A model generated the notes under the pieces. That model was not told where the DNA came from. It searched no databases and worked only from the letters and a program-made list of their open reading frames with translations. From NCBI GenBank assembly GCA_964234715.1, contig OZ174280.1: 64,000 bases of DNA. One strand, 5' to 3'. A program made the position numbers and the translations under genes. The number at the start of each line of letters is the position of its first letter. Position 1 is the stretch's first letter. The DNA comes from Podarcis melisellensis (lineage: Eukaryota). Positions 38,001-41,000 of this stretch are shown here, in pieces.

Positions 38001-41000
38001 GAGAGAAAGAGTACAAGCTAAAGGCATATGCCGATGACTTGGTGCTAACTTTAGAGGAACCAATGAACAGTGTTAGTAATACTGTAAAGATCTTAGAAGA
38101 ATTTGGCAAATTGGCGGGGTTCAAATTAAACAAGAAAAAAACTAAAATTTTAGTGAAGAACCTGGATGAAGTAGCAAAGAACCAGTTGGAGCATCAAAGT
38201 GGTAAAAAAAGTTAAGTACCTGGGAATATGGATATCGCCAAAGAATATAAACCTATTAGAAGATAATTACACCAAGGTCTGGAAAGAAATTAAGAGAGAC
38301 CTGGACATTTGGAATAGGTTGAAACTGTCTTGGACAGGAAGGATGGCTGCGATCAAAATGAGCATCCTACCAAAACTACTGTTTTTATTCCAGAATATTC
38401 CTATAATTAGAGGAACATCATGCTTTAAGACCTGGCAAAAAATGTTGACGAAATTCATATGGCAGGGGAAAAGGGCCAGAATTAAATTCAAACTGCTGAC
38501 GGATGCGAGAGAGAGGGGGGGCTTCACAGTCCCAGACCTAAGGCTCTATTACGACGCTGCCTGCCTCTGTTGGATAAAAGATTGGGCGACTTTAAAAAAC
38601 CTAGACTTATTGGATCTTGAAGGCTTTGATGCCAGGTTTGGCTGGCATGCCTATTTATGGCAAGATAAAGGTAAAGCCCATAAAAGCTTCTCAAATCACA
38701 TTATTAGAGGCTCCCTACTTGAAGCCTGGAACAGGAATAAAAAAGTAATTGAAAGCGGCACGCCTTGGTGGATCTCTCCAATTGACATTATAACGCTCAA
38801 AAAAATAAACCAAGAAGGGGATAGATGGACATATGAGGATCTCTTAGTTAAACTGGAGGGTGGATGGAGAATCAGACCCTACGAGGAGCTAAAAGGAAAA
38901 CTAAATAGCTGGTTACAATATCATCAGATTAATGCGTTGTGGCTTGAGCATAAAAAAACAGGGATGAGTGAAAAAAAATCGAAATATCAGGTAGAAATAT
39001 TGGAATCTAATAGCAAACTCCTCTCTAAAATCTATAAACAAGTGTTAATCTGGGAAACCAGAGATGAGGTAGTTAAGGGGGTCATGGTTAAATGGGCCAG
39101 AGATCTGGGACATAATTTGGAACAGGAGAAGTGGCAGAAACTATGGAAGAAGGGCATGAAGTTCTCGGCATGTGCTGCTCTCCGAGAAAATCTAGAGAAG
39201 ATGATGTACCGATGGTACATCACCCCAGCAAGTCTGGGGAAGATGTACAAAACCGGAGACAGCACCTGCTGGAGATGTAAAAACAAGGTGGGGAACTTCT
39301 TTCATATGTGGTGGACCTGTGAGGTGGTGAGAGGATTCTGGGACCAAATTTATGAGGAACTAAAGAAAATTTTAAAATATAACTTCCCTAAGATACCGGA
39401 AGCGTTTCTCTTAGGAATGGTAGGAGAAGAGATTAAAAGAGAAGATGAAAACTTCTTCCAATACGCCACGGCGGCGGCCAGGATCGCATTGGCGCAGAAT
39501 TGGAAAACACCTAACACCCCCACAGTTAAAGAGTGGCAGATGAAACTATTCCAATATATAGAACTAGCGAGATTGACACAAAGAATTAGATATCAAAATA
39601 ATACTAAATTAAAAAATGACTGGAGTAAATTTTTGGGCTATGTCGAAGTTACCTATGGAATGATGAAAATCTCAGTGGATGGAATTTAATACCTGTAATG
39701 TTTGAATATTTGTAATGATAATGTAATCAGCGAGTAAACTATAAGGATTTTACAACCCAAACCGGGAAGGATGGAAGTCACAATGTACGGAACGATGTTT
39801 TATTATCTTTTTTTGGTTTTTTTTCTTTCTTTTTCTGTCTTTTTCCTGCTTTCTTTTTTTTTTTTCCTTTTTCCTTTCTTTTTTGATCCCTTATTGTATG
39901 TTCTGCTGTGGTTTGTAGATGATCGTATGATTTGTGTAAAAAATTTAATAAACAGAATTAAAAAAAAAAAAAAAGAACCTGGGCTGTGGATTCTTATTTT
40001 GCCACTTCTCATTTTGCAGATGTTTGAGATTGCAGAAGGTGTTGTTGGGAACATTGGCCCCACTCACAACTTTGAACCCCCACATTATGATGGCATTGAG
40101 TGCCTAGCTATTCAGGGAGATGTTCTCTTCAGCGGCTCCAGGGACAACGGAATCAAGAAATGGGACCTGGACCAGCAGGAGCTCATCCAGGTATGAAGGA
40201 TGCTGGGTTTTCAAAGACAGAGGCAGTATACCATTTGTGTGGTGTGAATTATGCTGAGGGTGTCAATATACAGTTGGTGCATAAATTCCTCCTGTAGTGC
40301 AGGGGTAAGAAGGCCCCATGCTGACATCCCTGAAGGGGGCGGACCATGAGGCCAGTGGAAATTTGAGATGCTGAAATTCAGATAGGGCATGTACCCCATA
40401 CACATTAAATTTGTTTGCAGCAAGTATGGTCTCTGCATATGTGTACCAGCCATGATTGTATTGAGCTCAGTAAGCCTCTTTGAAAAAACAGGGTGGTTAT
40501 GCTAGAACAGGCATAGGCAAACTTTGGCCCTCAGATGTTTGGGACTACAATTCCCATCATCCCTAGCTAACAGGACCAGTGGTCAGGGATGATGGGAATT
40601 GTAGTCCCAAACATCTGGAGGGCCAGAGTTTCCCTATACCTGTTCTAGAGAGAGGACCAAATCTCTTGGAGCACTGAGTTGCTGGCAGTATCTAGTAGAA
40701 CCAGGTGCCCTCCAGATGTTTAGGGCTACCAGATTAGGGAAAGCAGTTGTAAAAGAATCCTACTATCTTCCTTTAATAAGTTAATATTTCCATTGTATAT
40801 TTTCCCAGCAGTCAAACAACATTGGCCCTCAAAGTCTTGTTGGGGGCCTTATCTATTGCCTATGTGTTGTATTATTTATTATTCTAGCTATTTAGTGGTC
40901 CTTGACTTGGTTATCTAGTATACTACAGGTAACAAGCACAATTAGTCCCAAGGCCAAGTGTGCCAAGTTTGGGGAGCTTGGGGCAACTCTCATAATCCCT

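Follow-up and report, generated by a model that had tools for sequence, protein, structure and literature searches.

A sense L1 tail beside an acceptor of a KIF21B-type gene in a wall lizard: a predicted cryptic terminal exon and its probable loss with the intron

The host gene and the L1 copy in its intron

The window analysed here, a 64-kb stretch of Podarcis melisellensis DNA (contig OZ174280.1), carries on its + strand the 3′ part of a gene of the KIF21 family, with a LINE-1 (L1) element in one of its last introns (Table 1). The 5′ part of the gene falls outside the window, and the exon numbers 32 and 33 are labels of an earlier, sequence-only reading. KIF21B, a member of the kinesin-4 family, governs the pausing of microtubules in neurons and T cells. 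Exons in the window match the regulatory coiled coil of KIF21 (PDB 5nfd/5d3a, E 1.6e-17) and the WD40 propeller of KIF21A (7klj, E 8e-37 for one exon), and seven WD units are spread over seven exons. With a fragment of a non-A mammalian paralogue (P0019), the two exons 3′ of the L1 share 86% and 89% identity, compared with about 74% for the same two exons against human KIF21A (counted by eye on the alignments), and over the coiled-coil exon the identity to human KIF21A is no more than about 57%. Judged by these identities, the host gene is of the KIF21B type (paralogue B, not A), the wall-lizard orthologue. A search of protein representatives with the exon 3′ of the L1 returned generic WD40 proteins and vertebrate genomic ORF fragments, and among them neither a full-length KIF21B nor a close lizard relative.

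The exon upstream of the L1 ends with the codons GAT CAC TAT GTC AAG followed by GT; its donor at 36789 (aag/GTATTG) matches the consensus at 6/9 positions and lacks the +5G. That this exon ends in phase 0, as the sequence-only reading held, is seen directly and also in the alignment to the mammalian KIF21B-type fragment (...DHYVK/MF...). The exon 3′ of the L1 runs from phase 0 to phase 0 between the acceptor cag/ATG and the donor cag/GTATGA.

The 2.7-kb element between these exons lacks ORF1 and the endonuclease. Its reverse transcriptase matches Pfam RVT_1 (E 8e-40), its best matches of solved structure are to human LINE-1 ORF2p (E 6e-71 for residues 466-752 and 1.5e-42 for residues 764-1226), the match to R2 is much weaker (1e-28), and a Cys/His motif, CWRC...H...C, aligns with the motif of human ORF2p. 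These features of the sequence place the element in the LINE-1 clade of non-LTR retrotransposons. Element and gene both lie on the + strand, and 45 nt (39975-40019) separate the A15 tail from exon 40020-40190, both as described earlier. The ORF2 remnant reads through 807 codons and is broken only by one frameshift, in an A7 run near 38204-38210; zero stops in 807 codons bounds the divergence of the copy at about 2.2-2.5%. The A15 tail is pure and is the sole run of at least ten A in the 64 kb; such a genomic A15 would imitate non-templated poly(A) ends. By its open frame and tail the copy is young, and it is dead. Most LINE insertions in lizards are young and occur at low frequency (PMC3787681, PMC5389967). 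Because this L1 is young, selection may not yet have acted on the insertion.

The 64-kb window holds no second copy of the same L1. A target-site duplication was not found when the 3′ flank was compared with 36790-37420 for repeats of at least 8 nt with 1-2 mismatches allowed, the 5′ edge being uncertain. A young-looking element that lacks a detectable duplication might point to an L1 copy misplaced into the intron during assembly. We consider such an error extremely improbable, since the junctions are clean, unique intron sequence flanks both sides, the A tail directly adjoins the unique flank and N runs are absent from the window; moreover, L1 insertions without duplication or with irregular 5′ ends are known.

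Table 1 Features around the L1 insertion (window coordinates; a slash marks an exon boundary)
Feature	Position	Strand	Remarks
Upstream WD40 exon (labelled exon 32)	36672..36789	+	WD repeat 4, WD40 E 3e-5; phase 0 end
5′-truncated L1, in the gene's orientation	37271..39974	+	5′ edge uncertain, about 37230-37325
ORF2 remnant	37271..39689	+	matches human ORF2p residues about 466-1226
L1 3′UTR	39690..39959	+	direct reading
AG-free zone	39778..39916	+	139 nt, 79% pyrimidine
U-rich core	39800..39885	+	92% pyrimidine
Cryptic acceptor AG	39917..39918	+	tttgtag/ATG
ATG ATC GTA TGA	39919..39930	+	Met-Ile-Val-stop after phase-0 upstream exon
L1 poly(A) signal AATAAA	39947..39952	+	TGTA x3 in upstream 100 nt
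L1 A15 tail	39960..39974	+	possible internal oligo-dT priming site too
Native intron end	39975..40019	+	GU/U-rich sequence, branch-point candidate, pyrimidine tract, acceptor cag/ATG
WD40 exon 3′ of L1 (labelled exon 33)	40020..40190	+	171 nt, 57 codons, WD repeat 5
Following WD40 exon	41854..42053	+	repeat 6 and start of repeat 7
Last exon, start	42755..42854	+	end of WD repeat 7, C-terminus ...GRATSLP, stop TGA 42852-54

Splice and poly(A) signals around the L1 3′ end

Splice and poly(A) sites were graded by transparent counts. The AG at 39776-77 is followed by the next AG only at 39917-18; among the 4648 AG-to-AG gaps on the window's + strand, this gap of 141 ranks second in length. The sequence-only reading had described an AG-exclusion zone with a very long pyrimidine tract. 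The gap itself is read directly and the tract is exceptional: C and T make up 86 of the 100 nt that precede the cryptic AG, the top value among all + strand AGs in the window. An exclusion beyond chance is not borne out, as the composition of the zone lets 1.46 AG be expected and 19% of its shuffles are free of AG (P about 0.19). The zone as a mark of selection is ruled out because its base composition accounts for it. Three branch-point candidates lie within it, namely TTTAT (A39802), TTGAT (A39886) and CTTAT (A39893), and the U-rich core with its near flanks contains seven U runs of at least five (among them U7, U8 and, as the longest, U12) along with six UCUU motifs.

Close to the cryptic AG, the local tract (-24 to -5) has 13/20 pyrimidines with T at -3, the lowest value of the eight acceptors compared, and the 25 nt adjoining the AG are interrupted by purines. 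In local quality, this site is equalled or surpassed by five further AGs of the intron. A fold of 39770-40040, in which U12 pairs with A15, was rejected as evidence because it was no better than shuffles (z +0.66). The L1-bearing intron contains no donor-like site scoring at least 8/9, which makes an internal (cassette) exon unlikely, and internal exonization was rejected on this ground.

The AATAAA reported earlier at 39947, with an A15 tail behind it, was confirmed at 39947-52 and 39960-74; a second hexamer, ATTAAA at 39957-62, overlaps the A15 region. The host flank supplies GU/U-rich sequence that may serve the L1 AATAAA as a downstream element, and the next 5′ splice site follows after about 240 nt. 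Branch-point candidates, tract and AG and then hexamer, UGUA and downstream GU/U are present in this order, the local tract being weak. The L1 sense strand is 35% A, and its 2.7 kb hold nine AATAAA/ATTAAA hexamers, where the window as a whole has 1.2 per kb; those inside the L1 body stand in poor context with 0-1 UGUA.

The A-rich strand with its nine hexamers might also allow the L1 to act without the cryptic acceptor, either through polyadenylation of unspliced RNA at any of these hexamers or through poor elongation across the A-rich body, with less full-length mRNA as the outcome. Transcription is known to be cut more by sense than by antisense L1 sequence (PMC3192792), the upstream donor is weak, and read-through of this donor (a composite terminal exon) would add VLDIIITFC before a stop closes the intron frame after 9 codons. 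However, this copy is just 2.7 kb long, its internal hexamers are poorly equipped, and other genomes tolerate thousands of comparable intronic copies, and we regard an action of this kind as very unlikely.

The native acceptor AG (40018-19) lies 101 nt 3′ of the cryptic AG. Downstream of the L1 stands a yUnAy match, CTTAT, whose A39996 is 23 nt away from the acceptor. The local tract counts 16/20 pyrimidines, C occupies -3, and both match and tract fall within the native site's AG-free zone of 42 nt. Since branch-point candidate and tract persist 3′ of the L1, within the last 45 nt of the intron, they need not be displaced, and the earlier suggestion that the insertion displaced the native branch point is unlikely to hold.

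Predicted transcripts and the probable fate of the L1

Splicing of the upstream exon to 39919 would give Met-Ile-Val-stop, as the sequence-only reading had stated, the four codons being present in frame; in the L1 3′ end after the cryptic AG, stops come quickly in two of the three phases. The would-be terminal exon would be about 42-57 nt long. Because the stop would sit in the last exon, the product would escape nonsense-mediated decay (NMD), so that the earlier claim of escape agrees with sequence logic. The loss of the last three or so WD40 repeats, also claimed before, can be given precisely: the predicted product is short by 156 residues, that is WD repeats 5-7 of 7. The literature likewise agrees with the role that had been assigned to the lost part, as the WD40 tail of KIF21B contributes to microtubule binding, microtubules being bound by the WD40 propeller and linker (PMC5383399; bioRxiv 10.64898/2026.07.29.741364). 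A KIF21B fragment with four of seven blades would probably fail to fold. The alternative last exon is, at this stage, a prediction from sequence signals.

Appreciable use (at least 10% in some tissue) of AG 39918 together with the L1 AATAAA as a skipped-type terminal exon would give a stable KIF21B mRNA ending in ...DHYVK-MIV and devoid of WD repeats 5-7. Every signal for this outcome is there in the right order and phase, the tract is extreme, the AG-free zone spans 139 nt, and after a distant branch point the first AG is the one used (PMC1431707). Furthermore, mutagenic L1s are typically sense copies near acceptors (PMC3088655), and exonization and cryptic polyadenylation have been linked to intronic L1s (PMC3192792). 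On the other hand, the tract adjoining the AG is weak, the exon would be very short, a stronger acceptor and a 5′ splice site follow at the short distances given above, and splicing repressors prefer long U tracts (PMC3629564, 10.1101/297853). We therefore judge appreciable use of this terminal exon unlikely.

The cryptic AG might instead serve as an alternative acceptor of the next exon, with no cleavage in the L1. The 101-nt extension is not a multiple of three and brings a stop after three codons; in the resulting exon of 272 nt (39919-40190), 260 nt separate the premature stop TGA 39928-30 from the next junction, and the transcript would be subject to NMD. KIF21B output would be lowered and no truncated protein made. 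This alternative shares the acceptor features of the terminal exon, an exon of 272 nt with a normal donor is compatible with exon definition, and new repeat-derived exons usually end in NMD (PMC5115870). Its local tract is nevertheless just as weak, the case for repressors applies unchanged, and a well-equipped poly(A) signal would have to be read through, which leaves this alternative quite unlikely. Neither this NMD outcome nor a repression of the hnRNP C/PTBP1 type had figured in the sequence-only reading.

While gene family, L1 identity, anatomy and frame are seen at the locus itself, the relative use of the sites we infer, and on balance we expect most transcripts to lose the L1 together with the intron, and the cryptic acceptor and poly(A) site to be used little or never. 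We propose that a young, 5′-truncated L1 with one frameshift inserted in sense into the intron that precedes the third-last coding exon; its 3′ end brings along a U-rich tract, a first AG, quick stops, AATAAA and an A tail; with this anatomy, any like sense copy is a potential exon trap. The native acceptor retains its own branch-point candidate and the better local tract, the L1 U runs are of the sequence type covered by hnRNP C and by PTBP1/MATR3-type proteins, and a 5′ splice site follows close behind the L1 poly(A) signal. With the native signals kept, repressors expected on the U runs and a 5′ splice site nearby, the L1 thus most likely leaves with the intron.

Low use of the cryptic site is in line with an intact native site, a cryptic local tract that is the weakest of eight and a would-be terminal exon of minimal length. 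In human, chimeric spliced ESTs are seen for only 4.6% of the LINEs that lie no more than 2 kb from an exon (PMC3088655), and on long U tracts hnRNP C competes with U2AF65 and thereby blocks exonization (PMC3629564; PMC5115870). Against low use speaks the position of the insertion in a zone that is depleted of LINEs, which are rare 50-100 bp from exons (PMC3088655), and both its orientation and its position are typical of mutagenic L1s, four of five of which are sense and four of five near acceptors (PMC3088655). In addition, the 86% pyrimidine tract resembles that of the gene's last-exon acceptor and of verified distant-branch-point exons, and the poly(A) context is good (AATAAA, three UGUA and a GU/U-rich flank).

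We give little chance to the stronger idea that the L1 tail functions as a terminal exon, possibly under tissue-specific control and released for example where U-tract/PTB-type repressors are low, as in neurons. If this were true, the KIF21B motor made by carriers would lack a complete WD40 propeller, and a polymorphic insertion would mean that a natural KIF21B allele, hypomorphic or neomorphic, segregates in wall lizards. Should the U-rich tract be a family trait, each sense copy of this L1 family would be a ready-made exon trap. Any use of the site would truncate or lower KIF21B and would provide a clean natural non-mammalian case of a sense L1 beside an acceptor breaking a gene. As it stands, the locus illustrates why few sense L1s are seen near acceptors. 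It is an ordinary, possibly harmful intronic insertion, and the mechanism in question, L1 exon trapping and premature polyadenylation, is already well known; the locus is a candidate suited to simple testing and not a new mechanism.

Comparison with known systems

Repression of antisense Alu by hnRNP C and of LINEs by MATR3/PTBP1 involves sequence of the same kind as the U7, U8 and U12 runs and UCUU motifs upstream of the cryptic AG, and silencing is the expected default for such repeat-derived cryptic exons (PMC3629564, PMC5115870, 10.1101/297853). In contrast to these cases, the U tract in the lizard lies on a sense L1 3′UTR and not in an antisense Alu or antisense L1, and binding in the lizard is an analogy.

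The cryptic acceptor also partly resembles the distant-branch-point acceptors (PMC1431707), in having a 139-nt AG-free zone, a U-rich tract and a branch-point-like TTTAT (A39802) at the 5′ end of the zone. In verified exons of this class splicing goes to the first AG beyond the tract (Gooding et al. 2006, PMC1431707), and scanning would here select the AG at 39917-18. The last-exon acceptor of KIF21B itself, which is AG-free over 93 nt, has the same build. The lizard zone differs from this class in that composition explains it (P 0.19), in that nearer branch-point candidates, A39886 and A39893, are available, and in the purines that interrupt the 25 nt beside its AG.

A further parallel is with mammalian intronic sense L1s that act by gene breaking, exon trapping and premature polyadenylation, and with mutagenic L1 insertions near splice acceptors; the shared feature is a sense copy within 50-100 bp of an acceptor, a zone depleted of LINEs and hazardous (PMC3088655). 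Mammalian intronic L1s, too, confront the host transcript with cryptic splice sites and a poly(A) signal of their own (PMC3192792, PMC2176070, PMC4859970). The mammalian cases rest on ESTs, minigenes or disease alleles, whereas the lizard case is known here from sequence alone. Compared with the mammalian elements, the lizard L1 has a 3′UTR with a long U-rich tract, and its acceptor and poly(A) signal stand within about 60 nt of each other at the extreme 3′ end and not in the body of the element.

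Host gene and L1 copy

The exon at 24452-24646 matches the regulatory coiled coil of KIF21A (PDB 5nfd/5d3a, E 1.6e-17, ~57% identity), one WD40 exon has a match in 7klj, a structure of the WD40 domain of KIF21A (E 8e-37), and seven WD units are encoded over seven exons. The two exons that follow the L1 share 86% and 89% identity with P0019, a fragment of the non-A paralogue from marmot, versus ~74% with human KIF21A (counted on alignments). We therefore accept KIF21B as the host gene, as the sequence-only reading had named it.

WD40-encoding exons around the L1 insertion (window coordinates)
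Feature	Position	Strand	Remarks
WD exon 1 of 7	33668-33803	+	
WD exon 2 of 7	35288-35469	+	
WD exon 3 of 7	36261-36426	+	
WD exon 4 of 7	36672-36789	+	directly upstream of L1 intron; ends ...TAT GTC AAG/GT, phase 0
WD exon 5 of 7	40020-40190	+	directly after L1; 171 nt, 57 codons, donor cag/GTATGA
WD exon 6 of 7	41854-42053	+	
WD exon 7 of 7	42755 to stop 42852-54	+	

The last-exon acceptor of KIF21B carries a natural 93-nt AG-free, CT-rich tract (42660-42754), in which the only yUnAy candidate is CTAAT (A42666), 88 nt upstream. Judged by these motifs, this site resembles the distant-branch-point acceptors, which are frequently alternatively spliced. Beyond the 3' end of KIF21B, the stretch 52520-53287 is rich in GC and holds a + strand open frame of 256 codons; it may represent a CpG island or a neighbouring gene's first exon.

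Within the L1, an ORF2 frame is open on the + strand at 37271-39689 (314 + 496 codons), broken only where an A7 run near 38204 shifts the frame. This frame contains Pfam RVT_1 (E 8e-40), and among solved structures it matches human LINE-1 ORF2p best, over residues 466-752 (E 6e-71) and 764-1226 (E 1.5e-42), far better than R2 proteins with only 1e-28. By sequence the element is therefore an L1 with a 270-nt 3'UTR that is missing ORF1, the endonuclease and the initial third of ORF2. The copy is young, since 807 codons are free of stops, which bounds the divergence since insertion at ~2.2-2.5% (95% bound), and since its A15 tail, the sole A run of at least 10 in the window, is pure. A second copy was not found within the window. 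Despite the young appearance of the copy, a target-site duplication was looked for and not found between the 3' flank (39975-39995) and the sequence around the 5' edge, which is placed approximately at 37230-37325. In lizards, most LINE insertions are rare, polymorphic and under purifying selection (PMC3787681, PMC5389967). Finding so young a copy in a single reference genome is therefore little evidence that it is harmless.

Signals in the L1 3' end

The sequence-only reading had proposed that the 3' end of the L1 forms a cryptic terminal exon, and all of its coordinates proved correct when 39300-40400 and 36500-37000 were read and positions scripted. The AG at 39776-77 is followed by the next AG only at 39917-18 (tttgtAG), 39919-39930 reads ATG ATC GTA TGA (M-I-V-stop), AATAAA (39947-52) and A15 (39960-74) come next, and 45 nt of intron separate the L1 tail from the native acceptor, whose AG is at 40018-19. 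The phase 0 assigned to the upstream exon end agrees with the mammalian fragment alignment (...DHYVK/MF...). Tract, AG, stop, AATAAA and A tail are the plain anatomy of the 3' end of this L1 and no independent coincidences. A stop occurs within four codons of the cryptic AG in two of three possible phases; the chance parts are therefore the orientation and place of the L1. An open frame of 141 codons (39771-40196) extends from the L1 3'UTR across the remaining 45 nt of intron and joins the reading frame of the following exon; it is taken as chance because no in-frame acceptor was seen.

The AG-free run of the L1 is the second longest among 4648 in the window. As a sign of selection it was rejected, because 19% of shuffles of the letters of this stretch (79% pyrimidine) also contain no AG; it is a by-product of base composition. 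The truly unusual feature of the cryptic site is the tract, not the AG gap: pyrimidines make up 86 of the 100 nt before the cryptic AG, the top value for any AG on the + strand, with the real last-exon acceptor second (85/100, 93 nt AG-free). The U12 run at 39854-39865 is predicted to pair with A15 (39960-39974), looping out the cryptic AG and AATAAA; shuffled sequence folds at least as well (z +0.66).

Acceptors, donors and poly(A) signals were scored by plain counts. In local tract the cryptic acceptor ranks last of the eight compared (13/20 pyrimidine at -24 to -5); its position -3 is T, its branch-point candidates lie 25, 32 and 116 nt upstream, and five other intron AGs equal or beat its local quality. 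The native acceptor has 16/20 pyrimidine, C at -3 and CTTAT (A39996) 23 nt upstream. Displacement of the native branch point by the L1, as previously suspected, is unlikely, because this CTTAT candidate sits within the 45 nt left 3' of the L1 and within the 42-nt AG-free zone that belongs to the native site itself. The context of the L1 AATAAA is good, with three upstream UGUA motifs and a GU/U-rich host flank, a setting not shared by the eight other L1 hexamers. Since no donor-like site of at least 8/9 occurs in the intron, a cassette exon is excluded and only a terminal or extended exon could form.

Possible transcripts and their likelihood

We lean towards the view that the L1 would be mostly silent in KIF21B transcripts, with its cryptic sites little used. 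The weak local tract of the cryptic AG competes with an intact, better native acceptor 101 nt downstream, and the 3'UTR tract contains UCUU motifs and seven U runs, the longest U12, sequences that hnRNP C and PTBP1/MATR3 preferentially target; these proteins keep splice and poly(A) sites of repeat origin silent (PMC3629564, PMC5115870, 10.1101/297853). Moreover, among human LINEs lying near exons (up to 2 kb away), chimeric ESTs exist for just 4.6% (PMC3088655).

If a terminal exon were formed, splicing 36789^39919 and cleavage near 39960-75 would give a last exon of ~42-57 nt. The transcript would escape NMD because the stop lies in the last exon, and the predicted protein would end ...DHYVK-MIV, minus 156 residues (WD repeats 5-7), consistent with the proposed loss of about three WD40 repeats. 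Such an exon would be very short, with a 5' splice site ~240 nt beyond the poly(A) signal, and its use at 10% or more is unlikely. Were the cryptic AG instead joined to the normal donor, a 272-nt extended exon would arise and, with the next junction 260 nt past its stop, NMD would follow; we regard this as rather improbable. The upstream donor aag/GTATTG agrees with the consensus at 6/9 positions and lacks +5G. Read-through into 36790-36819 would extend the frame by nine codons (VLDIIITFC) before it meets a stop, so that cleavage at an L1 signal in the unspliced intron would also give a WD40-truncated product. This outcome, or attenuation, is quite improbable, and misassembly highly so. The WD40 propeller and linker bind microtubules and support plus-end pausing (PMC5383399; bioRxiv 10.64898/2026.07.29.741364), which backs the role in microtubule binding earlier ascribed to the tail; either truncated product would thus be without a working tail.

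Use of the L1 signals is favored by the observation that verified distant-branch-point exons choose the first AG after a long tract (PMC1431707) and by the association of intronic L1s with exonization and cryptic polyadenylation (PMC3192792). Furthermore, the place and orientation of this copy, within the LINE-depleted zone near exons, are like those of known mutagenic L1s (PMC3088655). Read from the sequence, the terminal exon is an unproven, sound prediction of a well-known type of event.
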